Source of the DNA: Blastocladiella emersonii ATCC 22665
Taxonomy: Eukaryota; Fungi; Blastocladiomycota
Length of the DNA: 64,000 nucleotides
NCBI GenBank assembly: GCA_025594325.1
Contig: JANHCV010000006.1
Coordinates: forward strand, 1,116,001 to 1,180,000
Direction: 5' to 3'
Shown: positions 5,367 to 57,600 of the stretch, piece by piece
Position numbering within the stretch: position 1 is the stretch's first letter
How the letters are laid out: the number at the start of each line of letters is the position of its first letter
Notes under the pieces: model-generated
What the model saw: the letters and a program-made list of their open reading frames with translations, nothing else
Database searches by the model: none
What the model was told of the DNA's origin: nothing
Program-made: the position numbers and the translations under genes

Positions 5367-6996
5367 TCACTTGACAACGCGGCGCAGCATAAAGTACCGT
5401 CGTGTGCCCGTCTCGAAGAACAGCGACAGGACTGTTGACACGAGGCACAGCGCCGCGACCACGCTCGCCGCCAGGTACACGGCCCTGCTGTGGTGCGTGG
5501 CCGATGCGACGACGGGCAAGCGTATCGCCTGCGCGACCTCGACCGCCACGAGCACGCCGAGGACCAGCAGATGCGTCCGCGGGCGCAGGCGTATTGTCGT
5601 GCCGCGTCGACTGCGTCAGGATCAGGTTGGTCGTGACCGACTGCATGACCGTGTCGAGGAGCACAGCCAGGATTACGCTGGCCATCGAGTGCAGCACGAG
5701 GTATCCCTCAAGCGCGTACCCGCGCAGCGCCTCGACGCGCACCGAGGCCGCCCCAACCAGGAGGTGCACGCCGTTGAGCGCCGCGGCCTGCACGTACGGC
5801 ACCCACCACTGCGGCAGGTACGGCGCCGCGTGCGCGAGCCCGGGCCACATGGCGAGAAACGTCGCCTGCTCGGCCGCCGAGTTGGCATTGGTCCCGCGGC
5901 CGAGGTGCGAGAAGGCCACGACCAGCACGATCACGAGCTGCGAGAGGAGCCCGCACACGGCCGTGAAGCGCATCCGGCGGAGCAACCGCCGGTGGTAGTA
6001 CTTGACGTACTCTTCCTCGTACGCCGGGTCCGGGAACGTGTAGAACAGCTCGCCGCGCAGACGGTACACCGTGCGCAGGAATCGGCGGACCCACGGCCGC
6101 CGCCGGCGACGCCGGTCGCCTTCCTGCGACTGCGATGGAATGGAGGAAGGAGTGTCGACTCGGTAGGGTCAGTGGCGACAGAGCTGGGTGACCGTGCCAG
6201 CGTGCTCGACGCCTGCGCGGACGCGTCGGGCAGCCATGGTGTCGGCGCGCCCACATCGCGGGATGGACGCCGTGCCGCCGCTGGGAGCGACAATCGAGCT
6301 GCCGGGAACAATCGTCGCCGCGGCTGTCGTGCTGGAGCTCGGTACGACCGTTGAAAGCGCCGGCGCTGACTGCTGCATGGCCACGTCTCGCCACGTCGCC
6401 CGGACCCGGGCCAGTGTCAACGCTGGAAAGCTGCGAGAGGTGAATCAAGGCGCCCGGCCGCGCTGCGATGCGCGGTGCAGCAGGAGCGGCGGCGGCGGGT
6501 TGGGTCTTGGATGGTGGCGCGGCGCGACCGCGCGCTATGCTCGCAGCTGGAGTCGACGGGGCGATGAGGATGCTCGGAGGAGCAGCAGTGTCCGGTGAGC
6601 GTCGGTAACCGGCCGAGGATGCGGAGGCGGATCGGGCGATAGCCAGCCGCGAGGGCGCGGAGGGCGTTGATCCGACGGCCAATTCGAGAACAGGACGGGA
6701 AAATTGGTCATGCTCGCGATGGTCCGCGGGGTTAGACTCGACCGAGGACTGCCGAGCTGTGGCAGTTGCGCCGTGGTCAAACGCTGGGACTGAACGGCGA
6801 CCGTGGCCGCCCTCTGCTGGAGGTTGAAGTAGAAGGTGATCCGAGCAAGAAAGTCGCGCTGGTACAAGCCGTACCCGCTCTTGAAGAAGATATCGAGTAC
6901 GTTGAAGTCGAACAGCCATATCCACGACGCCAGCGAGTGGTTGGACGCAAAGCCGAGCACCACAATGGCGCCAATGAGCGCGAATCCGATCGGCAT
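5367..6996 (-). pseudogene. Copy A of the double-6TM cyclase-anchor-like family; 5'-truncated and frameshifted
   Basis: Homologous pieces lie in different frames (MPIGFALIG...GLYQRDFLARITFY in 6535-7266; MYRLRGELFYTFPDPAYEEEY in 5176-6069; FFETGTRRYFMLRR in 5367-5555). A small deletion after QSTRH shifts the frame near 5600; no exon 1/2 homology upstream of ~7000. Confidence 0.8.
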
Positions 6997-7365
6997 GCAA
7001 CTGGTTAGAGTTGATGGCAACTGGTTGGCCCGTTGCAAGATCAGCTCGACCCCAGGCCAGGCGCGACGGCGGGTGCGAGGCGCGTGAACCGCCACCCGGT
7101 TCCAGTGTGGGGACACGCTTGCCCCCGGATCCTTTGCAGCAGGTGACAATTGAACGAGCACGCGGCCTTGACCGAAAAGGCGGCACGGCCTCGCCCTCGC
7201 CCTCGCGCGCGAGACATTCCTCACGTGATGTCTCCTCGCAGTGGCGCATCGCGTCGTCGCTATCACGGGGGTGGCGCAATGCTAAAGCGTCTGCACGACG
7301 ACCGAGTAACACTCTGCTCGAGGATATCATCAGGCGAGAATAACGTTTAGGTCTTAAATACATTA

Positions 7366-10300
7366 CTAGTGAGCTAACTGACGCAGCATAAAGTACCGCC
7401 GCGTGCCCGTCTCGAAGAACTGCGACAGGACCGTTGATACGAGGCACAGCGCCGCGACCGCAGTCGCCGACAGGAACACAGAGGTATCGTGGTGCGTCTC
7501 CGGCGCAAGGGAACGTAATCGCGCCGCCTGCGCGGCCTCAGCGACCACCAGCATCCCGAGAACAACAAGGTGCGTCCGCGGGCGCATGCGCAGTGTCGTG
7601 GTCGCGAACACGATGGCGAGAACCTGGTGCCGCGTCGACTGCGTCGGGATGAAGCTGCTCGTCACCGACTGCATCACCGTATCAATCAAAATGATCAGCA
7701 GCACGCTTACCATCGAGTGCAAAATCAGGTACCCCTCGAGCGCACGTCCGCGCATCAACGGCACGTACGCGGCGACCGCAGCGATGACCAGGTGTACGCC
7801 GTTGAGCGCCGTGGCGTGCGCGTACGGCACCCACCACTGCGTCAGGTACGGCGCGACGCGCGCGACGACGGGCCACGCCGTCGCAAACGCGGCGTGGTCG
7901 GCCGCAGACATGCCGTTCCCAGCGGTGCGCCCGAGCTGCGAGAAGGCCATGACCAGGCCGATCACGAGCTGCGACAGCATTCCGGCCGCACCCGTGATGC
8001 GCATGCGGCGGAGCAGCGTGCGGTGGTAGTACCGTAGGTACTCGGCCTCGTATACCGGGTCCGGGAACGAGTAGAAAAGCTCGCCGCGGAGTCGGTACAT
8101 GATGCGGAGGACGCGGCGGACCCACGGCCGGTGACGGCGGGGGCGCCGGCCGTGCTCGCGCGGCACCGAGCCCGCGCCGCCGAGAAGCTCGGAGGCCGGC
8201 GGAGAGTAAAGCGTCGAGTCGGTTGGGCTGCTCCACATGGCTGCGGCTGAGGCTGGAAGGCTGGCAGAAGCGGCGAAGTCGGGGCCCCGCGTCAGAGTGC
8301 TGGATGCAGACTCGCTAGGTTCGGCTGGCCGCGGCGGCTGCGTAGGCAGAGGCAAGGCGGTAGCCCTGCGCTCGAGCCAACGCGACCATAACGCGGGATG
8401 AACGACGACGCCGCCGCGTTTACCGCCACCAGAAGGAAAACCCGGGGCAGCGAGCTGGATGGAACCACCCGGCGGACTGCGGGTTCCAGCGCCGGGCCGA
8501 GGAGTAGCAACGGGACTGATCACGGCGGCCATATCGGCTACAGCGGCCACAGGGAGCGCCGGAGCCGAATGCTGCATGGACGGCGCTTCCACGACGGTGC
8601 TGGCCGTGGGCGAGCTGCTGAGTTCCCCGACGGACCGGGACATGGTGGCGAGCGACGAGTGCATGGTCCGCGGGAGCGTCATCAGCATGGAGATATCGAG
8701 CTCCGATCCAGCGGAAATGTGGATCTCGGGTGCCGCGGCCGGGTCGCCGCCATCGTCGACCTGGGGCCCGCCGTCAAGACGCGAAATGTGGACGGCATCG
8801 ACCAAATGACCGGCGCTCGTCGCCCGCACGGGATGTACGACCACGTCTCTCGCCACACTCGAGTCGCTGCCTGGAAACCGAGTGACACGGATGGCGGGAG
8901 CTGGAGCAAAGCGCGGCGCAACGGTTGAAGGTGTAGCGGGAAGGGCGGCCGCACTGCTGACGGGTAACGAAGGTGTCAAGCTGCTTGGACTCGGTACGGG
9001 AGATGCCGATGTTGGCGAGCTGACGGAAATGGCGGGGGTGAACGTGGGAGCGGCGAAGGAGAGGGCAGGCGGTGCACACCCGTCTGTTGTCGACGGTGAA
9101 CCAGGCGCATGCAATGCCACGCACAAGTCAGTCACGACGGGCAACTGCTCGGGCGACGCGAGATGAGCCGCCATCAAACGCTGCTGCTGCGACTGCGCCA
9201 TCGCCGCCGCGGCGGCCTGCTGGACGTTGAGGTAAAAGGTTATGCGTGAGAAAAAGTCGCGCTGGTAGAGCCCGTAGCAGGACTTGATGAAGACATCAAG
9301 CAAGTTGAAGACAAAGAGCCAGACCCACGAGTCGGGCGCCTTGTTGAAGACAAGGCCCACGATCACGATGAGGCCGATCAGCGTAAACCCAACCGGCACG
9401 GCGTAAATGAAGAGGACGCTCGATGCACCGACAAAAAGGTAGAACGAGATCGAGGTCGTGGTCATCCAGAACCGCAGCAGAGCGTCGAGCTCGGCCGCGT
9501 CCCGCTCGCTACATACCGCCGCGAATTCGCGGCCAGGAGAAAGCAGGGCGTGGTCGTCCATGGTATGACAAGTGATTGGACACATGCACGCCGCGGCCTC
9601 GAGTAAAAAGGCGAGCAGCGTGAAGGCAATAAAGCAGTTACGCCTCCGCGTCACGGAAAGCAGACGATTACTGAAGATGGACGAGAGAAGGAGGGCGTGC
9701 AGCACGGCTACCACCTGGTACGCAAGGACGACGCCGAGTTGGCACGAGTCGCAGCTGCCAGTGATAGCAGGGCACGCGGCGAGAACCGCCTGGTACCTTC
9801 GGTAGGTGCTCATCATGAGCGCCATCCGAGCGCACACAATCGGAAGGAGTGCGCACTAAACGGAACGGCCGTCAGTCCATGGCGAGGAGCAAAGGCAGAC
9901 CGTGACTAGGTGTACCGTCATTACGAGTATGATCGAACTGCTCGCCCGAGTCCGCGCCTCGGTGTACTTTGCCTCGGTGGACCGCCGCGCGAACAGTAAC
10001 GTCCAAAGCGAGAGCGGCGAACCGCTCATGCCCTTGACGATATCGATGGCCGAGCCAAACATAGCTCGTGTGATTGCCCACGTTTCGCCGTGATCAGGCG
10101 CCGCGTCCAGTTTGACGCGGGTCACGGGGACAGCATCGAGCGACATTGAGAGGAGCGCGCTTGGCGACAAGGACGCGGAGCTGAGCTCGGCTGGAGAGCC
10201 GGGGAGCCCAGGAAGTTCAAGTTGCTGCGACACCTTTTGATTCAGAGGGCTCTCGGTCGCGATCTTGGGTTCTTCGTGCGTCAAAGGCTGAGAAGCCTCT

Positions 10301-10732
10301 ACAAGAGCGTGTCGATCGCATTAGAGAAGCACGCGCGACAAGCAGGTCACGAGATTGGTGTGTACCTGCGTCAAAAGAAGTCGGTTCCGCGATACGAGAC
10401 ACCGAGCGAAGAAGCATAAGCGACGGTGCGCGGGTGGCGGTCGCAAACGCAGCGAGTGTTGAGCGGGTCGTCGACTTGGTTGATGACTCATGTTGACTGT
10501 GTGCAGATTTGAACGATGCAGAGCCCCTTGATCCATCCAATGACGTTCGAGAAGCTCCAAATGGCAGGCTGGATGAGCCAGGGATCGGAACCGGCGAAGC
10601 ATAAGAACTGCGGGTCCGCGTAGAGACGTGTGACTCCGCCGAAAGTGCGTCTCGCCTTGCGGTGGCCGTCAGCGAGGGCGGAGTCAACTGCGGTGCCCCG
10701 TCGCCAGGTGACTGCATGTGGTGTTGATTCAT
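7366..10732 (-). CDS. Copy B of the double-6TM cyclase-anchor-like membrane protein; exons 10732-10366, 10298-9916, 9855-7366 (~1079 aa)
   Basis: Introns 10299-10365 (GTACAC..TAG) and 9856-9915 (GTACAC..ACTGAC..TAG) join three track ORFs in frame; colinear homology to copy D. Confidence 0.75.
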
Positions 10733-10981
10733 GGGGAGTTACATTGAGTGGTTCATGTGGAGATTTAACATAGAGATCAAGCAAGAGATGACGCGTTGTT
10801 CGATCAAGCGACACTCTCGGACTACGAGGCACGGTGCCGCACGTTCACGGATCGGGTCCCGAAGCAGCTATCTGTCTCAGGGCGAGTGGCCGCGGCAAAA
10901 ACCAGAGCACACAGGGCTACCTTGGAACACGGATCCGGCCGCTGTGTTTTTGTTTCGCAAACAAACCCAGATCCGAGGATT

Positions 10982-11039
10982 TCAAGCCCCAGTTCGGACT
11001 GCGAGACGGTCAAGCCCCCACTTCGGACTGCGAGACGGG
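10982..11039 (+). repeat. Two-copy ~29-bp direct tandem repeat (TCAAGCCCC(C)A-S-TTCGGACTGCGAGACGG) upstream of copy B
   Basis: Read directly in lines 10981-11040. Confidence 0.85.
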
Positions 11040-11185
11040 CCGCACCTGCCGACCCAGAGCCGAGGTCCGTGCATCTCCCACGGTTTTCAGCTGGTCCCCA
11101 TGACCCCGTGTTGAGTCGAAGTCGATCGGGAGGCATTGTCCTCGATTTACGCTCCCGCGAGCCGCGCGAGCCGGCAACCACGTGT

Positions 11186-11240
11186 TGTCTCACAAGTGGC
11201 GCAACGCGACGCGTCGGTCACGTGGGTGGCGCAGCACGTG
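11186..11240. repeat. Conserved non-coding element with core GTCGGTCACG-N3-GTGGCGCAGC; other copies at 7256-7280, 14565-14587 and 15151-15173
   Basis: Visual alignment of four copies, each lying just downstream of the stop codon of an array member. Confidence 0.8.
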
Positions 11241-11323
11241 GCAGTGACTCGAAAATTCTCGACCGTCACGTCGCTTTCCATCACTGTTTTGGCTAGCGTT
11301 AAAGCTACACATTCACATAGGAC

Positions 11324-14245
11324 TCATCGAACAGCGTGGCGTAGCATAAAATACCGCCGCGTGCCCGTCTCGAAGAAAAGCGACAGGACGGTCGACACGA
11401 GACACAGTGCCGCGATCACGCTCGCCGACAGGAACACGGCGGTACCATCTTGAGCTTTTGGGGCAAGAACACGTAACCGGACGACCTGTGCAATCCGAGC
11501 GATCACCAGCATAGCGAGCACCATTAGGTGCGTCCGCGGGCGTCGGCGTAGTGTCGTGGCCATGACCTGGTGCTGCGTCGATTGAGTCAGGCTAATGCTG
11601 CTCGTAATCGACTGCATAACCGTGTCGAGCAGCACAATCAGGAACACGTTGAACAGCTCTCCGTGCAATCGGTACAGCATGAGAAGCGTGCGACGGACCC
11701 AAGGGCGACGTCTATGACGCTGGTCGCGGTCCCTCGGGACCGAACTCGCGCCGCTGAGAAGTTCAGAGGCACGTGGAGAGTCAAGCGTCGAGTTGGTTGG
11801 GCTGATCCACATGGCCGCGGCAGACGCCGGCGGGCTAGCGGCTGCAGGAAACTCGGAGCCTCGTGTAAGCGTGGCCGAAGCCGACTTGTTTCCGTTGGCG
11901 GTCCGCGGTGCTCGTGGAGGCGACGGCGAGGCGCTTGCCCTGCGCTCGAGCCAGAGCGTCCAGAGCGTAGGATGTACGCCAACACGGCCGCGATCACTAC
12001 CGTAAATAGCGAGCTGAATGGACCCAGTTACTGGACTGCGAGTCTCGGTGCCGAGTCGCGAGGAAGCGACAGGAATGGATGCGACGGCAACGGGGAGATC
12101 CGGCGCCAACTGCGCCATTGACGTCGCATCTGGAGCTTTGCGAACCGCGGGCATCTCGTTATGCTCTCGGGTGGACCGGGACACGGTTACAAGCGACGAG
12201 TGCATGGTCCGCGGCAGCGTCATGAGCTCGTGCACATCGAGTATCGAGATGTTCACAGCGAGGTCTGACCCAGCGGTAAGCTTGATCTCGCATGCAGTCG
12301 GGTCGAGGCCGCTGGAGGCATGCAGCCCAGCGTCAAGCTGCGAAACGTGGACACCATCAACCATATGACCGGTAATAGCGGTTCGCACGGCATGTACGGC
12401 CGCGTCACCCACCACGTTCGATTTGCCGTTGTAAATGACGGCAACCTGAGAAGGACGCGGTGCGACGGTCAAAGGTGTGCTAGCGATCAAGGGCCCGTCG
12501 TCGTCGGGCAATGAACGTGGAAGGCGAATCGCAACAGCGGCGGAAGCGAGGGCGGGTTGTGTACGTACGACCGTAGAAAACGGTGGGCCGGGTGAATGAG
12601 ATTCCACGCTGAGGTCAGGCGCGGTGGGTAACTGCAAAGACTGTGGCGATCGAGCTGCCATCAATCGCTGCTGTGACTGCACCGCAGCTGCAGCCGCGGC
12701 CTGCCGCACGTTGAGGTAGAAGGCGATGCTTGAGAGAAAGTCGCGCTGATACAGCCCATAGCAGGACTTGATGAAGACATCAAGCAAGTTGAACACAAAG
12801 AGCCAGACCCATGAGTCGGGCACGTTGCTCAAGATGAGGCCCATGATCACGATGAAGCCGATCAGCGTGAAGCCGACCGGCACGGCATAAATGAAGCGGA
12901 CGCTCGATGCACCGACGAAGAGGTAGAACGAGATCGAGGTCGTGGTCATCCAGAACCGCAGCAAGACATCGAGCTCGACCGCGTCTCGAGTGGCGCACAG
13001 TGCCGCAAACTCGCGGCCCGGTGAAAGAACAGCGCGGTTATCCGAAGCATGGCACGCAGTTAGACACATGCAAGTCGTGGCCTCAAGCGCAAAGGCCAAG
13101 AGCGTCAAGGCAATAAAGCAGTTTCGCCTGCGCGTCACAGTGATCAGGCGATTGCTGAAGATGGAAGAGAGCACGAGAGCGTGAAGCGCGGCCACCAACT
13201 GGTACGCGATAACGACGCCAAACTGACAAGAGCCGCAGTGGCCATCAACGGCAGGGCACGCGGAGAGGACGGCCTGGTACCTCCGGTAGGTGCTCATCAT
13301 GAGCGCCATTCGAGCACATAAAATTGGAATGAGAGCGCACTAGAGGTATTGAATGTCAGTTTACGGTCATCAACACAGAAGGTAGGTTGAGGCACAGCAC
13401 CGTCATCACGAGAACGAGAATAATTGGACCGCTTGTCCTCGTCCGCGCCTCGGTGTACTTGGCTTCAACCGACCGCCGCGCAAACAGCAGCGTCCAGAGC
13501 GAGAGCGGCGAACCGCTCCTGCCCTTGACAATATTGATGGCTGAGCCGAAGACGGCACGAGTGATGGCCCACGTTTCCGTGTGGTCATCGGGCCCCGTAT
13601 TGAGGCTGACGCGGGTCGTTGGGACGTCAGCGAGGGACATGGAGAGGAGCACGTTTGGTGTCAAGGACGCGGAACTGATCTCGGCAGGAGGCCTGGCGTG
13701 CCCTGGAGGCTCAAGTTGCTGCGACGCATTTTGGTTGGAAAGCGAGCCGCGGTCGGGGCCCTCGCTCTTCAGCGCAACCGCTGGCTCGTCATGCGTCAAC
13801 GGCTGCAATGCCGCTACAAGAACAGATCTTTCGAGTGAGACGAACTTGAACTAATGAGGAAACAACTAAGTTTCTCAGTACCGGCGTCCGAAGAAGCTGC
13901 TTCTGCGAGTCGCGACACGGAGCGGAGGAGGGCGATGGACGATGCACGAACGGCAGTCGCAAAGGCAGGACACGTGGTAGAAATCGTTGACTCTGGTTGG
14001 CTCCGGGCGGACATGAAGGATCCTGACCCACAAGACTTGGAACCGTGAAAAAAAGTCTGAGAATTGCAAGAAAATCCGTTGCCGGAGGAACCGGGATACT
14101 GAGGCGGGGAGGCAGAGGAGCTGCTGGTCCGTGTCAACAAGTGAGACCTCACCGAAAGCGTCCCACGCGCCGCCGCGGCAGTCGGTGAGGGCGGTGCCGA
14201 CCGCGGGGCGCCATCTACCGGCATTTGCATGTGGTTTTGTTCCAT
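11324..14245 (-). CDS. Copy C of the double-6TM family; exons 14245-13882, 13813-13401, 13339-11324 (~930 aa); in-frame deletion of about three TM helices in the second block; possibly decaying
   Basis: Introns 13814-13881 and 13340-13400 restore the frame. LYRLHGELFN joins directly to VFLIVLLDTVMQ, whereas copies B and D have over 100 aa between these points. Confidence 0.65.
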
Positions 14246-14861
14246 GGGAGTTCCATAAGGTGGTGTCTGAAAGCGTCGATCGACGATATTTCGTTGGTTC
14301 GAGCGAGGTGGTTTGGCTGCGAGACACTGACCGCACTTTGCAGCTCGAACCGTAAACGAGTTCGACAATTTTAAGCCACGCCTTGGGTTGGGAGACGACC
14401 GAGCCAGCACACCGAGAGCGAGACGGGATTCGGTTGTGTATCCCATCCAGTTTACGGCAGATCCCAACATTTTGGGTCGCATCGAAGCCAATCGGAAGGC
14501 CATGGTCCCGATTGAGACGCGTGAGACGTTGTGCACTGTTGTCTCGCATGGGCGCACGCGACGTGTCGGTCACGAGGGTGGCGCAGCGCGTAGCGGCCAC
14601 GCTTGGGGTCGCGCGTGGCGGCGACGCGAAACGTTCAATTCCCTTGGTTGCGTATCGAAGAAAATCGAAGAGCTTATATTTATGCCGAAAAATTAACACT
14701 GGACATCCGTGTAGCCTTGAGCACAGCGTCAGCTACTATCAAGCGGCGATGAGGTCGAGCGACGACTACGCTTCGGGTTTGCTAAGGGACTATTTGAATT
14801 TTGGGCTCATAGGTAGTGCGAATACTCAAGTTAAGCGTATGGACTCATGCATTAACGAGAT

Positions 14862-15047
14862 TCATCGAACAACTCGAAGCAGCATAAAGTACCGCCGCGT
14901 GCCCGTTTCAAAGAACAGCGACAGGACGGTCGACACGAGGCACAACGCAGCGACCACGCTCGCCGTCAGGTACACGGCACTGTCGTGGTGCCCTGCCGGG
15001 ACCGCAACGCGAAGTCGTACAGCCTGCGCAAGCTCGGCTACAACCCA
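14862..15047 (-). pseudogene. 3'-terminal fragment (last TM helices) of a fifth copy of the double-6TM family
   Basis: Minus strand reads VVAELAQAVRLRVAVPAGHHDSAVYLTASVVAALCLVSTVLSLFFETGTRRYFMLLRVVR*; homology stops near 15050. Confidence 0.85.
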
Positions 15048-15285
15048 GCGCCAGATATCTTCACCAACTACTGATCAGAAAGGTATTCGTCGCGATCACG
15101 AAATATGCGAGTGATTCACCAGACCGGCAAATCGCGTCGCGTCGCGTCGCGTCGGTCACGCGAGTGGCGCAGCGCGTGGATGTGGCACACACCCGTTCAT
15201 CGAAGTTGCAAGCCCGTCTAACGAGGACCATGGATTCATCTCGCGTGTTACGACCGTAACGATGCACAAAATCTACATGTATGAT

Positions 15286-18200
15286 CTAGTGGACGACTCG
15301 ACGCAGCATAAAGTACCGCCGCGTCCCTGTTTCGAAGAACAGGCACAAGACCGTGCTGACGAGCATAAGCGCGGCGACCACGCAAGCCGATAGATACAGC
15401 TCGATTTCGTGGTACGAGTCGCTCATGATATCGCGGAGGCGCATCGACTGTGCGATTTCGGCCGCCACGAGCGTCGCCATGACCAGCAGATGGGCCCGAG
15501 GTCGGAGACGCAACGTGGTGATGCTGAAGATGGTGGCGAGGACCTGGTGTCGCGTTGACTACAGGCCCGGTCGAGCAGGTGAGTTGATCGTGGGTTCGGT
15601 TCATGAAGAGTAGCTGCCGTACCTGCGTCAAAACAAACGTGCTCGTCACGGCCTGCATCACCGTGTCGAGGATGATGATGGTGCACACGTAGAGCATGGA
15701 GTGCGCGATCAGATACCACTCGAGCAGTGGCCCGCGAAGGGCCGGAACAAACGCTGCCGCGGCGCCCACGGCCAGGTGGACCAGGTTCAGCGCGATGCCC
15801 TTGGCGTACGCAAACCACCATTGCGTCGCCGACGGCGAGATCAGGGCGACGAGCGGGAACTCCTGGGCAAACTTGACCACGTCGACCGTCCCGCTGACGC
15901 CCGAGCGAAACCCCATGCGGATCGCGCCGAGGATGATGCCGATCAGGACCTGCGAGATCATGCCGCAAAGCGCCGTGATGCGCATGCGCCGCAGCAGCTT
16001 GCCGTAGTAGTACCGCAGGTACTCGTCCTCGTACACGGGGTCGGGGAACTTATAGAACAGCTCGCTGCGCAGCCGGTACATGGTGCGCAGAAACCGCCGC
16101 ACGAACGGGCTCCGCCGCGCAAGCGCACGTTGCCGTTGCCGGTGCCGCTCCTCGCGGTGGCCCGAGTTGGACGCGCCCGCGGTCCCGAGCGTCGTGGCGG
16201 GCGAGAAGAGCGTCGAGTCGGTCGGGTCGGATCGCATCGACGTGAGCTGCGGGCTCGTCGTGTTGGCGCTCGGCAGTGTACTGGACCCAGTCTCGGTGGG
16301 ATCGACGACAGGCGGTCGTGGCGCAGGCTGCGCCGATGCTGACGCAGAAGCCGCCTTCTGCTCGAGCCACCGTGCCCAGATCGCCGGGTGCATGCCGAAC
16401 CCGCCACCGGGGCCACTGGCGGCTGTGCCGGTCGCGCCACCGGGTCCGCCCAGTCGGACGGCGCCAGGTCCCGCGGCACGCTGCGGGTTCCACGGCGCGC
16501 CGCTGGCCGGCGTGAAGAGTAGTCCGGGCCCGCTCGCCGGCAGCGTCGGCTCGGACCGCTGCTTGATGGTCTTGAGCGAGCCCGCGACGTTCGCGTTCGC
16601 GACCGCGATGTTGTCGTCCTCCTTGCTCGACAGCGGCGACGAGTCGGTCAAGTTGGCCGCCGACCGCGAGATGGTCACGAGGGACCCGCGGAACTTGCGC
16701 GGCAGCGTCATGAGGTCGAGCGACGAGATGTTGGCGGCGATCTCGGACTCGAGCGAGACCTCGATCAGCGGCGCGACGCCGAGCTGGCCACGCCCGCCTC
16801 CGCCCTCGCCACCCGGGCCGCCGCGATCGTAGAGCCCGCCGAGCTGCGACACGTGCACGCCGTCAACGAGGTGCCCACTGCTCGCCGACCGCACGACATG
16901 GACCGCGACGTCCGCGTTGCCGGCCGAGTCGCCGGGTAGCCGCGAGATGTGGACGCGGGAGCCGTGCGTGATGCTGTTGGACCGCGAGCGCGGGCCGTCG
17001 GGCATGGAGCTCGGGTTGGATCGGGCGGAGGCAATCGAGCCTGGCCTACTGCTCACGGGCGACGTACTCGACGAGCTCATGTCGCGCGAGACGGACGGGT
17101 TCGGGCTCGACGGGTCGATGAGGATCGTCGGGCCGTTCATCGTAGGCGGGGTGACGGTGAAGCCGCCCGCGGTCATGATCGAGGACTGGCGGTCCACGGA
17201 CACGACGAGCCCCGCGCCGAGCGCCGAGGTCGACGGGTCGGCGAGCAGCGACACAGCCGTCGCGTTGGGTCCACGGGGAGCCGAGTCCTCGTTCCGGGCC
17301 AGCGGATCCGGCAGCCCTACCTCGGAGCTGGGCGGCGGCAGCCGTGCGGTCGACGGGAGGTGCGCGGCCGTCATGCGCTGCGACTGGGCCGTCTGCGCGG
17401 CCTGCTGGACGTTGAGGAAGAAGGTGATGCGCGAGAGGAAGTCGCGCTGGTACAGGCCGTACGCGCCCTTGAACAGGTTGTCGAGCAGGTTGAAGGCGTA
17501 GAGCCAGACCCACGACTCGGGCGAGTGGTTGAGCGAGAAACCGGCCGTGAGCACCACGAGGACCAGCACCGCGCCGACGGGCAGCGACCGGTGGAACATG
17601 ACGCTCGACGCGCCTATGAAGAAGTAGAACGAGATGGACGTGTTGGTCATCCAGAACCTCAGCAGGGCGTCGAGCTCGACGGCGTTGCCGTTGTTCGGGC
17701 ACAGCGCGGCGAACTCGCGGCCGGGCGAGAGCGTGGTGCCGTCGGCGACGCGGTAGCACGCGGTCGGGCACATGGCGCTCGCCGTCTCGAGCGCAAAGGC
17801 GATGAGCGTGAATGCGATGAAGAAGCTGCGGCGGCGCGCGGCCGAGATGATGCGGGGCGGGACGAACATGGACAGGAGTACGAGCGCGTGGAACAGGCCG
17901 ACAAGGTAGTAGGCGATGTAGACGACGAGCTGGCACGTGTCGCAGCTGCCGCCGATGGCCGGGCACGCGGCGAGCACGTCGCCGTACCGGTTGTGCGTCG
18001 CAAGGTGCAGGATGAACCGCACGGACAGGATCGGGAACATGGCCCACTACAAAGATCGGTGCGGAGAGTGAGCATGGCGCGAGCCCGACGGCCCTCGAGG
18101 CAGCGGTACCGTCATGATCAGGATGATGGAGTTGCTCGCCCGGGTGCGCGAGTCGGCGTACTTGGACTCGATCGACTTGCGCTCGAAGATGAGCGTCCAG

Positions 18201-19186
18201 AGCGAGAAGGGCGGGCGGTTCCGGCCCGAGAACAGCTCGATGGCCGAGCCGTAGATGACGCGGCCCATGGCCAGCGCCCCGTCGCGGTCGGGACCCGTGT
18301 CGAGCTTGACGCGGATGGCCGGAACGTCTATAAGCGAGGTGCTGAGCAGGGCGCTCGGCGTCAGCGAGACGGCGCTGCTGCCCGGCCGTTCCGCGTAGGG
18401 CGTGGCGAGGGTGACGCGGTCGGGGAGCTCGAGCTGCGACGGCTGGTACGAGGAAGCGCCGGGGGCTTGCGGGATGGTCTCGATGGTATCGGCGCTCTGC
18501 TGTACTCCGTCGCCGCGCTCGTTCGAGTCGTTTCGCGCGAGCGGCTGTGATGCCTCTACGTGAGAGCGATGACGGCGGGTAAGATCCGCGCGCATGGACG
18601 AGGTTAGACGGTCGCGGCACGTACCCACGTCTGTGTCGATCGTCGCGGGCGCCACGATGCGCGAGATGGAGCGGATGAGCGCCTCGGACGGCGCACGGAT
18701 GGCGGTGGCAAAGACGTGCGAGCTCATGGCCGACATGGCCGACAGGGTCTGCCTGCTCCTGGCCGACTTGAACGACTCGGAGCGGTGGAGGTGGTCATCG
18801 TCGGCGGGCGGGGAGGTCGATGACGACGACGAGGTGCGAGCGCGCGCGCGGTCGGGGAGCGGGCCGCTCAAGGAGTGCGAGAGCGGGGAAGCATGGAGGC
18901 TGCGAGACGCCGACGATCGCGATCTAGATCGCGACAGCGAAGGAGAGAGGGTATCGCGCGCGAAGCTCGCGGGTGGGGAGGAGACCGGCGAGGATGGTGA
19001 TGGTATCGGCGCGCTGCCCTGCAGGGTCCCGCGTGAGAGGTGGCCATGGGCGTGGTCGCGCCCATTGGTGCGCGATGCCAGGGACCCGGTCTCGGGAGCG
19101 TTGAGATGGCCCAGGTCATTGTCGGGTGCGGCGCGACGCGTCGAGTTCGAGGCGGACGGGGTAGAGGAAAGGTCGGGGCGAGTCAT
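15286..19186 (-). CDS. Copy D (most intact) of the double-6TM cyclase-anchor-like membrane protein; introns 18556-18624, 18047-18109, 15559-15622 (~1230 aa)
   Basis: Splicing joins IILIMT|WAMFPIL and VLTQ|STRHQV in frame. Two six-helix hydrophobic blocks are separated by a long S/P-rich linker; codon usage is GC3-rich like the housekeeping genes. Confidence 0.85.
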
Positions 19187-20221: not shown

Positions 20222-24040
<3,819 letters not shown>

Positions 24041-37566: not shown

Positions 37567-40462
37567 TTAATCTTGAATGATATTTACATCCAGCAGGACA
37601 ATCACGGTGAGCTCAAACCACCCACTTTCACCCGAGCCAGTTGTTGAAGACTGCTGCGTGATCTCGACACGCCCACCCGCGCGCTGCACCATCTTGACGA
37701 GTGCCGCGTACGTGAGACTGACGTTACCGAACTCAGACCCGCGCGACCCGAGAGTCAGGTTGAGACCGTCGTTGAGCTGTTGAAGTGCGGATGCTGACGA
37801 GCTTGCACGACTGAGACTGACAGAGAGCTTGAACTCGGCCAAAGTCGTTGAGGAACGTCGCGAGGCTTCTGCCGTTGCAGGGGATGCCATCGTCGCCGCG
37901 ATCCGACACTGCGCCTGCGGCTCGGCGAGCTTGACTGCAACCTCGACGGCCTTGGTCACGATGGCTGCGAGCGCACTGGGCGAAGCCGCAGGAACCGGGC
38001 GCGAGCCAAGGGCGGCGAGATCGACGGCCACGTCCAGCGCTCGGGCGTTGATCTTGCTCCGCCGCAGCTCGAGCGCGCTCTCGATGACGCGGCCCACAAA
38101 CTCGGCCAGAGTTCCACTGCCGACCTCTACACGGTCAACGGGACACGGCATCTCGACGCCCGAGTACCCGGCCACGTCGTTGAGCGTGTCGACGACGTGC
38201 CACGCGGCCTCGCACGCATCGTCGAGCTCGCCACGAGCCGCGTCCTTGGCATTTGCTGAATTGAGGTCGACGACCATGTCCTGCGCGTCCTCGTACACGC
38301 TGCCGACGACGAGCTGGAGCAGCCGACGGCGTGCGCGGGCCGACTCGGCCGCGGAACGCTGGAGGCCGGCAGCTTTGCGCATGTGCTCGACACGCTCCGA
38401 AATATCGTGGAACAGGACCACCTGGGCGAGTCGGCGGCGCAGTGGGATCTCGGGCTGCGCGGCGCCGGGCGGTGGAGTGGTGGCAGTGGTCATGGTCCGC
38501 TCGGTGCTGTCCTCGACGGCGCTGACTGAGAGCTGGATCGCGAGCGTGGAACCGTCACGGCGCAGGACGAGGCCGTCGTGCGTACCCGACACGAGCGTAG
38601 AAGGGCTTCGAAAAGAAGTGGCTGCGGCAGAAAGGTGTGGGCTAGACGCTGTGGAGGTTGATCCAGCGAGCGAATGCTGAGAGCGGCGACCGCGCAGCGT
38701 CGAGACCGAGGAGCGAAGGCTAGAGCCAGATGAGGCCGTAGCCTCGACGCCGTCCTCATCGAAAGTCGCAGAGAAATGCTCGTTCGGCTCGGCAGTGTTG
38801 ATGGGCTGCACGCTGAGCACGGCGGAAACGTGAACACGGTCGAGCTGGCCCATGGAGTAGCCGGCCATCTCAAGCGCGGCGTCGTTGGCGCCCATGATAA
38901 GCCCGTCGCTGTCAAGTAAGACCATCCCGTCGGGGATGGCCTGCGTGATGGCCTTCGAGTAGTCGCGCAGCGTGTCGAGCAGCCGCTCCTGCGCGCGCAC
39001 GCGGCGAAGCGTCTGCTGCGACGCGACCACTCGCTTGAGCCCGCGGCGGGCCAGCTCGGCGGCCACGATGGACACCGCGGTCACGATCGCGAAGAGCACC
39101 CACGGCCACACGGTGCCGTACTGGTGGCGGTAGGCCTTGGTCGGGATGCACTCGACGCGCCACGGATCGAGGCCCTTGACGACGAACGGCAGCACGTACG
39201 TCTCGTGCGTCGCGAGCGACTCGGGCGTGAGCGTCGAGTTGTTGGCACCAGCTCTCGTACTGGCCGGGTCGTAGATAAATACGGGCTCGGGGTAGCCTGG
39301 ATAGTGCATGCGTAGGGCAAAGGCGTTGCGCTTCAGGTCGTCGTTGGCGCGAAATGCGCTGAGCAGCGTGTTGGTAAACAAGTCGTGGAGGTTGAGACCG
39401 ACCGAGACGACCCAGCGCGTGAAGGGCGTCAAAGGTGTTGGATCGCGAGGGGCGACGTTCATGTACAAGCTGACGCCGAGCTTGTGGTTATCGAGGAACA
39501 GCATAGGCGTGCTCGACGTCCAGTGGTTGGAGTTGATGGTGTCGAGGATCGGCTTGCGGCGGAGATCGTCGGTCAGCAGGCTCCAGCCGACACCGCGACT
39601 TGTACTACCGTCGCCGGCCCACCTGGAGCGCGATGGGAAACGACTCGTGAGCTCAGGTCGTCTCGACACGTGCAATCAATCACGTACAGGTAGACGCCGA
39701 CACACATGATCGTGTCGTTCTCGGCGAGGTTATCCGGGTTCGACCAAATCGTCAAGTTGTACCATCGCTCGAGCTCGCCGGCCTGGGCCTTGTCAATCAC
39801 CGCGGCGAGCATCATGCGGTAGAAGAGGTTGCGGTCGAATGAAGAGCGCGTGCCGTACTGGCCAAGACGCTCTACAAAAGCGTGCAGGATAGTGTCAGTC
39901 GTTACTCGAACTGGTGAGCAGTCCAGCGCGCTCGTACCCAAAGAGAGGTCACTCGTGGCATGCGCAAACGAGGCGAGATTGGTGAGGTACTGGATCGAGC
40001 GCACGGCGAACACGGTCTCCAATGAGCGAACGCTGACCTGGCAAGTGTTGGTGAAGTCGCGCAAGAAGGTCTTCCGCTCGATGGAGCGGAACCACAGGCT
40101 CAATCCGAGAGCAGCCGCTGCATACGCGGCGCGATGCGAGGTCAGCGTGGAGTACGCGTTGCTGACTAGCGTCACGCAAAGGTACCGAGGCCGATCAGCA
40201 GTACGAGGGACATGCCGACGGCGGGCAGCGTATGCGGCGAGCGGGCGGAGCGGCGGCCGAGGCGACCAAGCCATGCGATCGGGCGACCGCGGTACCGGCG
40301 CCAGTTGAAAGGGCCCGAGGTCACGGTATCGTGAAGCGACGGTCGGCCGGCATCGCTGGTCGCAAGTTCACCAGGCGCGTCCGAATGTGCGAGGGTCCAC
40401 AGGTCGAGGCCAGTGAGTGGTGCGCGGTTCTCCTCACCAGCTGAACGGTTCGTCGTTGACAT
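37567..40462 (-). CDS. TM-CHASE-TM-PAS receptor with a degenerate HisKA/HATPase module and no receiver; exons 40462-40186, 40117-39706, 39622-37567 (~914 aa)
   Basis: TM1 VGMSLVLLIGLAAALGLSLWF; CHASE-like GWSLLTDDLRRKPILDTINS...LYMNV; TM2 WPWVLFAIVTAVSIVAAELA; PAS AIPDGMVLLDSDGLIMGANDAALEMAGY...RRDGSTLAIQLSVS...FHDISER; HATPase-like tail MVQRAGGRVEI...G.G..F. Introns 40118-40185 and 39623-39705. Confidence 0.8.
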
Positions 40463-41224: not shown

Positions 41225-42560
41225 TTACATGCCGACGATCGGGATCGCCGTCTGGCGCAGACTCGCGCCCGCGTCCTGCGTCATACCGTCCGCCGACGTG
41301 TGCATCTTGCCGCCGCCGCCGCCGGCGGCAAACTCGGCGTCGGTGAGCTTGGGCAGGACGGCGACCGGGTACGCGTGCGTGAGGCCGTCGCGATGGCCCT
41401 TGTTGACCTCGACACGCAGCTCGAGCGTGAGCGTGCCCGCCATGGCGCCGCGCGGCTCGACCGAGCACCAGTTGCGCCGCCCCATGAGCGCACGCTGGTC
41501 GGACGGCAGCTTGTGCGTCGGCTCGCTCGCGTCCACGTCGAACGGCGCGAGCATCGCCTCGGTCAGCAAGTCGCCCGACTCCCCCGAAACGGCGAGCGGC
41601 TTGGCGACGGCATGCAGCGCGCGGATCACGATACCCGGCGGAGGGATGTTGCCGATCGCCGACGAGATGATCTGCGTCATGTGCGCCGGGTGCGTGAGCC
41701 ACTGGTCCGCGGGCACCGACGACGGGAAGATGTGGCCCGCGCCGCCGCAGTGCACGTCGCCCGAGACGAGCGTGATGCGTAGGTTGCCGCGCTCGCGCGC
41801 GATGCGGCCGAGCATGTCGAGCGTGGCGTTGCGCTCGGCGACGTGGTTCGCCGACGTCCAGTGATCATTCAGATCGTCAAGCAGCTCGGGCTCGCCAAGC
41901 GAGTTGACGATCGTCTTGAACGCGCCCGACTTCTTGAGGTACGAGAACCACGGCATCTTGCCCGCGACGTGCCCGACGGCGTTGGCCGCGATGCCGGCGA
42001 CCGAGATGACCGACTCGGCGTGCAGGCGCGGGTACACCATGGGCACCGTGGCGCACACGAACAGGTGGCGCGTTGACGGCGCGAGCTGCGTGCGCAGGGC
42101 CTCCTCGATGAGCGTCCACGACCCGCCCGACACGAGCGTGTCGACGGACCGCTCGGTGCGCGTGTCGATGAGCAGCGCCGCGTTGTGCGGGCCCATCTGA
42201 CGGACCGCCGAGTGGCCGCCACGGTCGACGCCCAAATACCCGTCGGCGGTGCGGGCGCGCGCGAGCGTCGTGTGGTGCTGGAACAGCAGGTAGAAGCGCT
42301 GCGCGGCAATGAACAGGCCGCGGAACACGGGCGACGCCTGCAGGTAGCCCGGGTACGACCCGAACCCGTCAAAAATGTCGTGGTCGTCCCAGACGAACAT
42401 GGACGGGATCGAGGCGAGCGCATCCGCAAACCCGTCCTTGGCGAAATAGTGGAGGTACTGCGCGAAATAGAAGCCGTGGGCGGCGTCGTTCATGGCGCGC
42501 GTGAGCGGCGCCGTCGCCTTGGCGTCCTTGTGCTTGAGCGCGATTCCACGCGCTGGCAGT
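41225..42560 (-). CDS. PhoD-like alkaline phosphatase D family protein (fungal PhoD_2 type); N-terminal part not found, possibly a 5'-truncated pseudogene
   Basis: IPSMFVWDDHDIFDGFGSY, LLIDTRTER, LDDLNDHW, LVSGDVH and QIISSAIGN match PhoD metal-binding segments; the frame has a stop just upstream of ~42580. Confidence 0.8.
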
Positions 42561-54641: not shown

Positions 54642-57600
54642 TTACACAACCTCCCCTGGCCTTGGTGGCGGCGGCGGAGAGACCGCGGCGGCGAAGGCGG
54701 CGGCCCGCCCCTTTCCGCCGCCGCCGTCGTTAGCTCCTCCGCCGCCTCCGCCGCTTCCGCGCTGCCCTCCGCCGCCCTTCCGTGGCGGCGCCACGCGCGG
54801 GACGAACGCGTCGGCCTTGGTGCTCGCGCCGCCAAAGTCGACGTGCAGCGGGACGCCGAACCGGATGAGGTGCCCGACGAGGTCGCGGTCGAGGCACACG
54901 TCGGCCGCGGACTTGTCGCCTCCGACGGCGCGCCCGCCCGCGACCACCGTGGCGCGCGGGAACACGGGCGGGAACGCCGTCGACTCGCGCGCGAGTGCCG
55001 CGCGGCGCCGGACCGCCTGCTCGACGAGATCGGGCCTTGCCACGGGCACCGCGTCCTGCACCTCGACCACGGACTGGTACAGCGCGCCGATGCGCGACTG
55101 CGACAGGTCCCACTCGAACTTGATAGGCGGCGGCGGGGTCTTGGCGCGCTCGGCTTTCGCGGTGGGTGCGGCGGGGTTGAGCGGGGCGAGCGGCGACTGC
55201 GCTTTGCCCGGGGACGTCGGTATCGGGAGCACCGCGGGCGTCGCGGGACACGACGTGGTGGCCGGGGCGATGGCGCTGACGCTGACGCCGTCCGGGATCG
55301 GGAGCGCGTCAACAGCAGCGCCCGGCCGGAGCAGCGAGAAGAGCTGCGTCTCGCTCGCCGCCGCGCTGCTGGCCGCCGTGGAGACGGCCGCGGCTTGGAT
55401 CGATGCGCGCCGCGAGGCGCCCGGTGCGCGGGCGAGGATGGACGCGCGCCGCGACGCGATCGAGTTCTTGCGGATCGTCGTGATCCACTTGAGCGGCTGC
55501 TCGTCGGCCAGGTCGCCGAGCTCGTCGTCTTCTTCCTCGAGCATGGTCCCGTCCACGCTCATGCGCCGCTTGGGCTCCGTCTTGAGGAGCGTCTCGCCCG
55601 AGTACGTCTCGAGCACTGGGTCGGTCGCTGCCGCGTTGGTTGTCGTCTCCTCCTCGGCGAGCTCGTCCTCTTCGCCCTCGGGCAGCGGCGGGAGGTGCGC
55701 AAACTCGTCGCCGTCGTCGTCCTCGTCGTCAGCATCGCTGCCCGCGCTCGCGCTCCTGCGTCGCCGCCCGCCGCCGCGACTGGCGCGCCGCTTGTGTCCT
55801 TGCCACTCGAGAGTCGGGTCCGACGGCTCGTTGCCGCTCTCGCCTTGTAGCGGTGGTGCTGGATCCGAGCCCGCTTCGCCCGGCGTCACGACAACGCCCG
55901 GGACCCCGTCGTCCACCGCCGACGCCGTCCTCGGCTCTTCGTGCGCCGCGAGGGACGCCGGCAACCCCGTGAGCACACCTCCGCCCCCGCCACCCGTCCT
56001 CCGCTTCGCCGCCACGCCCTCGAGCTTCCTCGCCGCAACCTCCTCAGGCGACGGCCCATCAATCACCTGCTTGGCGTACACCTCCATCTGCCGCCGGCGG
56101 GACTGGATGAGCTTGACCGTCTCGTTGGGCACGCGCCGCGCGCCGATCACGTCCATCTTGGGCAGCCCGCCGAGCATCGCCGCCATGCGCGCACCGAGCC
56201 CGTACCCGAGCCCCGCGAGGTGCCGCCCGGCGTTGCGCGACGCCAGCTCGGACGTCTGGGTGCGCGATCGCCGCGGCGCGTGGGGGTGGTGGGAAGACGA
56301 GGTGTCGAGGGTGAACTTGGACTTGGGCACCGTGTCGCCGTGCCCGCGCAGCGTCGTCGCCGCGAACGTGTGGTCCGCGGCCGCGTGCGCTTCGTCGTCG
56401 TCGGTCGTCGCTGAGATGAGCGAGGACGCCGCCGGCGCGGGGGCGGCGGTGCCGTCGAGGGTCTGGGTGAGCCACGCCGTGGTCGGCGCGGGCGGAGGGC
56501 TCGCGTCCTGCGGTAACTTCGCGACGTGGCTCAGCAGGTCGTCGCGCGACGAGAACTGCTCGAGCACCGCGTCTAGTCGCTTGAGTACTGAGTCGTCGAA
56601 CAGGACGTCCAGGTCGGCGGTTGGTTCCAGGTCGCCGAGCTCGCCCAGATCTACACGGATCCCCGCGTCAGTCGTGGCCATCGTGTAGAGTCGCATGCAC
56701 GACGTACCCTCGAGATCGCTATCCTCGCCCGCACCCTTCTTCTCGTCAGGCGGTGTATGCAGGTCCCGCCTGCCGCGGATAAAGTCCACAATCCGGCGGA
56801 CCCGGTGCGCGCGCCAAACCGCCTGGATCCGCGTCGCCGCCGCGGCCCTCCTCCGCTCCTCGGCCAACGCCTTACGGACGCGGTAATCGCGGAACGCGCG
56901 CTGAATGAGGACCGCGCCGACGATCGCGCGGCCGACCCAGTGGCGGACGAGGAACCCGCGGCACTGCGCCTGGAACCGCGTCATGTGCAGCGGCGCGAAC
57001 GCGTCGAACAACTTCCCCCGCGCAGCGTGGTACACGGCGTGCGAGCAGTCGGGCAGGTTGCCGTCCAGGCACAGCCGGCACAGCGCCGTCAGCTGGCTGT
57101 ACGCGTGTGCCTCGCGCATCGCGGCCGCGGCGGCGGCGTCGGGGCCTTGGTCTGCGTCATCGTCGGCGGGAGGGACGGTCGTGGTGGCCGCGGGTGCGAC
57201 ACCGTCGGCGGCCGTGGGTGGCGGGTCCTTTTGCTCGGACGGCGAGTTGGACAGGATCTGCATCACGTCGCGGAAGTACACGTGGATGTCGCCCATTTTC
57301 TACACGGCCCACGCTCGTGTCAGTGGCCGCGGTCCGTGGCCGAGTGACGAAGCGTACAATCGCGAGCTGTGCCGCGTCGTTCAGAACCTGCTCGAGCATC
57401 TCAGCGTCGCCCGGCCTACCCATTGCGCCCATCCGTGAGCCATCATCCAGTCCACTCGAGCGAGATCAACGCACCGAACCGGGTCCTTGACCTTGTTGTA
57501 CCGGCCGTACAGCGCGCCGAGGAGGACGCGGTACAGCAGCCCGTTGTGGTTATCGCCGGCGACCTGGCGCTCGGCGACGACGCCGTCGAGGTCCAGCCAC

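Follow-up and report, generated by a model that had tools for sequence, protein, structure and literature searches.

The DNA window analyzed here is a stretch of 64,000 nucleotides from the fungus Blastocladiella emersonii ATCC 22665, and its subject is an array of related genes for multi-helix membrane proteins that resemble the membrane domain of transmembrane adenylyl cyclases (tmACs) without the catalytic domains. The original prediction had placed a locally expanded tandem family of such proteins at 5367-19186. Tblastn searches with two of its members, copies D and B, find one family on the minus strand at 5376-19186, and a maximum-likelihood tree unites all its units in a single clade with 100/100 support, which bears out both the family and its local expansion. 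From high to low coordinates the array contains five related units: copy D, a relic of 55 codons, and copies C, B and A. All array features below lie on the minus strand.

Two of the units are intact genes. Copy D (15286-19186) comprises 1234 codons from the ATG at 19186 to a TAG stop, in four exons (19186-18625, 18555-18110, 18046-15623 and 15558-15286). Copy B (7366-10732) comprises 1079 codons, likewise ending in TAG, in three exons (10732-10366, 10298-9916 and 9855-7366). The junctions of both were read directly from the DNA; all introns run from GT to AG and are in frame, and the spliced models are free of internal stops. The 3' intron of D (15559-15622, 64 bases) is precisely absent from B and C, with conserved codons on either side, and is an exact loss or gain event inside the array.

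The remaining units have lost parts. Copy C (11324-14245) keeps its reading frame from an ATG at 14245, with a third exon at 13339-11324, as judged by tblastn, alignment and exon junctions. An in-frame deletion of about 110 residues, seen in alignment and tblastn, has removed the motif in front of the seventh transmembrane helix (TM7), TM7 itself, TM8 and most of TM9, and copy C therefore has 6+3 helices. Copy A (5376-6996) is a decayed, frameshifted 3' fragment, detected by tblastn with a change of frame. Its 5' half, including the N-terminal tail and TM1-TM4, is gone; what remains is TM5-TM6 with the helix that follows TM6 (6763-6996), and the second helix block in two frames (5599-6078 and 5376-5600). 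The relic of the fifth copy (14880-15044) was found by tblastn and retains, in its 55 codons, TM11-TM12 and the C-terminal motif, with 75% identity to B.

Over their shared part, the NCBI protein H9P43_005696 (P0001, the numbering used below for D residues) is identical to the D product, and the three introns and the stop agree. The annotated start (MSAMSS) lies downstream of the ATG at 19186. Judging from the sequence, D probably starts 150 codons upstream of the annotated start, and the homology of B and D in the region upstream of it suggests that the longer N-terminal tail is real. Public annotation also under-calls the rest of the array: B is present only as its last 290 residues (P0003), and the decayed copy A appears as a spliced model of 274 residues (H9P43_005694, P0006).

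The proteins encoded by B and D share one order, namely a disordered N-terminal tail, six transmembrane helices (block 1), a linker of about 330-398 residues, six more helices (block 2) and then the stop, 14 residues past a conserved glutamate that follows TM12. A 6+6 layout with a long linker had been claimed for copies B to D; it holds for B and D, but not for C with its 6+3 helices. In D, block 1 (17360-18202, split by the intron at 18047-18109) starts with the motif in front of TM1 (18158-18187) and continues through TM1-TM6. In the spliced sequence it contains cysteine-rich outer loops at 17933-17965 and 17699-17770 and, after TM6, a YQRD..R..F helix at 17420-17452. The cytosolic linker (16166-17359, about 398 residues) is predicted to be disordered, and the predicted local distance difference test (pLDDT) of an AlphaFold2 model is below 50 over residues 425-812. 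Serine, proline, alanine, glycine and threonine make up 57% of it; for the linkers of B and D the range is 57-60%. All four sequence islands that had been reported in the linker are present as placed: HLVDGVHVSQL (16841-16873), LMTLPR (16697-16714), HPAIWARWLE (16361-16390) and PTDSTLFSP (16199-16225). Block 2 of D (15289-16108, TM7-TM12) contains the intron at 15559-15622, the motif FPDPVYEDEY in front of TM7 (16019-16048), the loop TTLRLRPRAH (15490-15519) and ETGTRRYF after TM12 (15310-15333). The corresponding parts of B are block 1 at 9175-10008, the linker at 8185-9174 and block 2 at 7369-8127. Assuming a cytosolic N-terminus like that of tmACs, an orientation read from the sequence, basic residues concentrate in the predicted cytosolic loops and the cysteine-rich loops point outward.

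How far does this family extend? An exhaustive search of 1.84 billion representative proteins with a profile of block 2 (cut-off E of 0.001 or better) returned 15 relatives. B. emersonii contributes nine of these, Catenaria anguillulae five and Allomyces javanicus one, so that all are from Blastocladiomycota. Word-indexed protein searches had found only D itself and one paralog, and a full-length alignment search added none. B. emersonii alone has at least nine family loci. Local mapping with hidden Markov models gives the order block 1, linker, block 2 in every full-length member, and wherever a family protein has an intact block 2, its chain terminates some 15-110 residues past TM12. In the tree, D is sister to B, C, A and the relic, with the relic grouping with A, and the sister group of the whole window clade is a second B. 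emersonii array (H9P43_005802, 005812-005816). Together, these results strongly support a family that is confined to Blastocladiomycota and has expanded by local tandem duplication, with loss of copies in the array.

A relative on another contig, H9P43_002691 (P0008, annotated with 2504 residues), contains two complete units of the family arranged head to tail; the FFESAHRR after TM12 of the first runs straight into the TLRF..LE.KF motif in front of TM1 of the second. It is either a true fusion with 24 transmembrane helices or two genes merged by the annotator.

Sequence comparison among the members speaks for long-term constraint. The ratio of nonsynonymous to synonymous substitution rates (dN/dS) is 0.16-0.43 across comparisons, at a synonymous divergence (dS) of 0.7-1.7; for B and D it is 0.32-0.43 at a dS of about 1.2, and for block 1 of B and C it is 0.16. 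By these values, the intact copies are old and under purifying selection.

Several positions are invariant or nearly so across the three genera. They include the six cysteines of the loops TM1-2 and TM3-4, in keeping with the conserved loop cysteines of the original prediction, Y-Q-R-[DE]-x3-R-x2-F after TM6, F-Y-x-F-P-x4-E-x2-[YF] before TM7, T-T-L-R-L-R-P-R-x-H in the TM10-TM11 loop, F-E-x3-R-[RK]-Y-F after TM12, and L-x-T-L-P-R in the linker. A W-W pair, an aspartate in TM9 and H-Q-V at TM10 are near-invariant as well. Among the linker islands, L-x-T-L-P-R is the only one of the four with conservation outside this array. Polar residues are conserved within helices, too: N372, D375 and K379 in TM6, D980 in TM9 and H998 at TM10. 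Conservation is strongest at the cytosolic juxtamembrane face, and is also seen in the outer loops, whose cysteines could form disulfides.

Catalytic domains were absent wherever we looked for them. The Guanylate_cyc family (PF00211) has no match in any of 12 members scanned, up to an E-value of 10; no Pfam domain at all was found in any family member, with all copies and paralogs scanned; and none of the 15 relatives, which we checked for the same anchor fused to a cyclase, has a cyclase domain. There is no cyclase open reading frame (ORF) between the copies of the array or elsewhere in the window, and the DNA downstream of D and of B is in each case the next array member. Because catalytic domains are missing, the family proteins cannot make cAMP or cGMP themselves, which we regard as all but certain provided that the gene models are correct.

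The structure prediction agrees with the helix count and connects it to cyclases. AlphaFold2, run on D with a 12-sequence family alignment and no templates, gives 6+6 helices with pLDDT values of 80-95 in the transmembrane blocks, and a disordered N-terminal tail and linker. Both TM6 (365-415) and TM12 (1044-1083) extend into the cytosol as long helices. In Foldseek searches of the PDB, AC5, AC9 and AC8 are at or near the top, with E-values of 0.28 or worse. A scan of 48,161 representative PDB chains that does not depend on Foldseek ranks AC9 (21.1) and AC5 (20.5) first, then ImcA, a diguanylate cyclase with six transmembrane helices (12.2), and all others at 9.6 or below. The model of a Catenaria homolog (P0012), which is only about 20% identical to D, behaves in the same way (AC9 22.8, AC5 20.6, ImcA 14.2, Mycobacterium tuberculosis Cya 8.0). 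In the structural alignments, block 1 of D corresponds to the first (M1) and block 2 to the second membrane domain (M2) of AC9, AC8 and AC5, and the two hexahelical domains are packed as one bundle of 12 helices, as is characteristic of tmACs and not of the bacterial MASE/6TM class, in which a single unit of six helices is fused to an output enzyme. The AlphaFold2 weights should be older than the first tmAC structure (2019 release), in which case, with no templates used, the predicted fold was not copied from those entries.

An MFS-type transporter fold, which also has 6+6 helices, was considered and rejected, as no such fold competes in Foldseek, in the scan of the 48,161 chains or for the Catenaria model. 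This outcome favors the original prediction, which had named a transporter fold among the findings that would speak against it. Full-length searches told us less. Against the AFDB clusters, the D model was swamped by matches to disordered parts, the rows with a probability of 1.00 including an adenylate cyclase, a guanylate-cyclase fragment, a GGDEF protein and two unnamed proteins, and an Atlas shape search with the full-length model was uninformative.

Short juxtamembrane motifs point in the same direction. As had been described from the DNA, a conserved segment stands before each block and an R..F helix after it; for the family as a whole, these read F-x4-[LIY]-E-x2-[YF] before TM1 and TM7, and [DE]-x3-R-x2-F after TM6 and TM12. 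The four motifs occur in the same order and spacing, and at similar distance from the helices, in human AC5 and bovine AC8. In AC5 (chain 8SL3_A) they are F221-x4-L-E227-x2-Y230 before TM1, E401-x3-R405-x2-F408 after TM6, F744-x4-L-E750-x2-Y753 before TM7 and E1009-x3-R1013-x2-F1016 after TM12; AC8 shares these elements, for example E922, R926 and F929. Their counterparts in D are F161...Y170, D388/R392/F395, F853/E859/Y862 and E1070/R1074/F1077. The structural alignments end where D 1084 meets AC5 1023 and AC8 936, and where Catenaria 993 meets AC5 1042, and these offsets are exactly as expected if the conserved glutamates coincide.

This register also locates the missing parts. In cyclases, C1 and C2 (the catalytic domains) are preceded by cyclase-transducing elements (CTEs) with the centers S-x-L/M-P in CTE_1 and N-x-L-P in CTE_2 (PMC9552081). 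The D protein terminates at a position equivalent to AC5 1023. This is some 18 residues before the NILP of CTE_2 (AC5 1041-1044), and the protein hence lacks CTE_2 as well as C2. There is strong support for two proposals made from the DNA, that a disordered linker takes the place of C1 and that the protein ends where C2 would start: the linker stands in the position of C1/C1b, and the stop falls within the helix which in a cyclase runs on toward C2. The linker motif L-[LMS]-T-L-P-R resembles the LSVLPR in CTE_1 of AC5 (LLLSVLPRHVA), and H9P43_002658 has S-T-L-P. The motif lies about 200 residues from TM6 in sequence of low model confidence, and may be a CTE_1 relic or a coincidence.

From fold and motifs together, it is likely that the genes encode homologs of the complete 12-helix membrane domain (M1 plus M2) of pseudoheterodimeric class III cyclases of the tmAC type, much as the original prediction had held for the anchors. 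Language-model features fit with this, as the best named neighbors of both blocks are clusters bearing AC_N (0.90-0.94), followed by MASE and 6TM_PilS sensors, which we take as a lead only.

A number of points speak against this view or weaken the support for it. None of the sequence methods gives a significant link between the family and cyclases: searches of the PDB sequences, by the B ORF and by profiles of the blocks, gave no cyclase match, and neither AC_N (PF16214) nor Adcy_cons_dom (PF06327) matches any of the 12 members up to an E-value of 10. The Foldseek E-values quoted for AC5, AC9 and AC8 are not significant, and the D and Catenaria models share one shallow alignment of 12 sequences. 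The motif comparison was set up after the motifs had been seen and is therefore corroboration, not an independent test. By hhalign, no similarity is seen between block 1 and block 2. M1 and M2 of tmACs are likewise described as dissimilar (bioRxiv 10.1101/694877). The gene models are without transcript support, and the public annotation was made ab initio; the four runs that contain the locus consist of genomic contigs in which the introns are still present, and no RNA run is listed. Descent from the fungus's own tmACs is unproven, as the family was set beside them by description only. Internal duplication as the source of the two blocks was also considered, and cannot be demonstrated from the sequence by the hhalign comparison.

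The comparison with known systems brings out what is shared and what is not. With the membrane domains of AC9, AC8 and AC5 (6R3Q/7PD4, 8BUZ and 8SL3), the family has in common the four juxtamembrane motifs, the prolongation of TM6 and TM12 as cytosolic helices and a long, non-conserved cytosolic segment between the halves. Unlike these enzymes, it lacks C1, C2, CTE_2 and any match to AC_N or Adcy_cons_dom, its chain ends at the AC5 1023 equivalent, and it has the six conserved cysteines in the outer loops as well as the invariant T-L-R loop that joins TM10 to TM11. With tmACs the family shares only 10-13% sequence identity. B. emersonii itself has adenylyl cyclases with tandem catalytic domains and multiple transmembrane regions, assigned to groups 6-7 (PMC9730499). 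Being from the same genome and phylum, these are the obvious candidates for parents or partners of the family, although they carry PF00211 and the family does not; we compared them by published description only. The bacterial proteins Rv1625c/Cya of M. tuberculosis (7YZI) and ImcA of Pseudomonas aeruginosa (8WCN) are single, dimerizing units of six helices fused to an enzyme, whereas the blastocladian proteins have two dissimilar units in one chain and no enzyme.

Taken as a whole, the evidence leans toward a catalysis-free anchor of the tmAC type that serves as a sensing or partner-binding regulator. Most economically, the family would go back to a duplicate of a 12-helix cyclase gene in an early blastocladian, from which both catalytic domains were lost; descent from the fungus's own cyclases is suggested by the narrow taxonomic range. 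The retained bundle, with its six conserved outer-loop cysteines, could then serve for sensing or for the binding of partners. The state of the bundle may be read out on the cytosolic face, since it is there that most conserved residues cluster (the helix before TM7, the stubs of TM6 and TM12, and the T-L-R loop between TM10 and TM11), and linker motifs such as L-x-T-L-P-R may contribute. The most plausible role would be to recruit or regulate other proteins rather than to catalyze a reaction, with the fungus's own membrane cyclases as leading candidates. The roles suggested in the original prediction were a stand-alone receptor, a decoy or a regulatory partner of true cyclases. In tmACs, the intracellular surfaces are reported to be more conserved than the extracellular face, and a ligand pocket has been suggested near helix 4 and the TM3-4 loop (PMC12414865). 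A more specific version of the model is a good deal less certain, though conceivable: the proteins would be free-standing receptors derived from the tmAC membrane domain, which sense an extracellular or membrane ligand through disulfide-braced outer loops and signal in trans, through the TM6/TM12 stubs and linker motifs, to separate cyclase catalytic proteins or other effectors. If true, such an arrangement would be a membrane cyclase split by nature, and would show the anchor to be an autonomous signaling module.

Other explanations have to be weighed against a regulatory anchor. Homologs of the cyclase anchor might have been put to a use other than signaling, with a bundle that moves or binds a lipid, ion or small molecule and a linker that is a mere tether. 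The conserved polar residues inside the helices would fit such a use, transporter-like roles for the membrane domains of tmACs have been under discussion since 1989, and tmACs are regulated by lipids through these domains (PMC12414865, PMC11606603). Yet transport has been established for no tmAC anchor (PMC12414865), and conservation peaks at the cytosolic juxtamembrane face and not along a pore-like path, so that we consider this use rather unlikely. Homology itself would be in question if the family were an unrelated, lineage-specific group of 12-helix proteins with a convergent structure and motifs that are generic juxtamembrane features. The lack of any significant sequence match to cyclases is what such convergence would predict; it is nevertheless improbable, given that four motifs share order and spacing with AC5 and AC8, that the alignments end in register, and that the language-model features independently point to AC_N.

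The state of the array raises the question of whether the genes have a function at all, or are decaying remnants of cyclase genes. Copy A is frameshifted, the relic is reduced to 55 codons, C has lost three helices, and transcripts are not in evidence. We nonetheless hold evolutionary debris to be quite improbable: B and D have kept frames of 1079-1234 codons in the face of a dS of about 1.2 and with a dN/dS of 0.32-0.43, the same architecture and motifs persist across three genera with identities of about 20%, and the loci in B. emersonii number at least nine. The ab initio annotation and the lack of a listed RNA run also leave room for true cyclases with missed or trans-spliced catalytic exons. 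This appears very improbable, however, because in the family proteins the stop comes no more than about 15-110 residues after any intact block 2, because in H9P43_002691 the motif after TM12 leads directly to the next motif before TM1, and because downstream of D and B there is the next array member and no cyclase ORF, with no cyclase domain anywhere in the window.

A regulatory anchor without catalysis would bear on a question about cyclases in general. The two hexahelical domains account for about one third of every membrane adenylyl cyclase, and their function is debated, with roles as receptor, interactor or dimerization domain having been proposed; a 2025 review on the membrane domains speaks of a "signal transduction blind spot" (PMC12414865, PMC11606603). 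That a 12-helix domain has been kept under purifying selection, and at no fewer than nine loci in one fungus, argues that the membrane domain is useful alone. The family thus offers natural constructs with which ligand binding, partner binding and cyclase regulation by the anchor can be tested apart from catalysis. We found no description of such catalysis-free cyclase-anchor proteins in the searchable literature. The cyclase census of the genome paper used PF00211 (PMC9730499), and the family would have escaped it for this reason.

Some further features of the window deserve mention. Just downstream of the D stop, a stretch of 30 bases (15133-15162) recurs in several more of the sample's long genomic contigs, and the local word depth there is about threefold; it looks like a short dispersed repeat. 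Outside the array, domain matches of ORFs identify a PAS-domain protein (37567-39675), a PhoD-related phosphatase (41225-42493) and a protein with IQ calmodulin-binding motifs (54642-57296), all on the minus strand and none of them a cyclase. Next to the array, on the plus strand, a long ORF (20258-24040) has two ZZ zinc fingers, an N_BRCA1_IG (NBR1-type Ig-like) domain and a weak PB1 match, and by these domains looks like an NBR1-like autophagy receptor.

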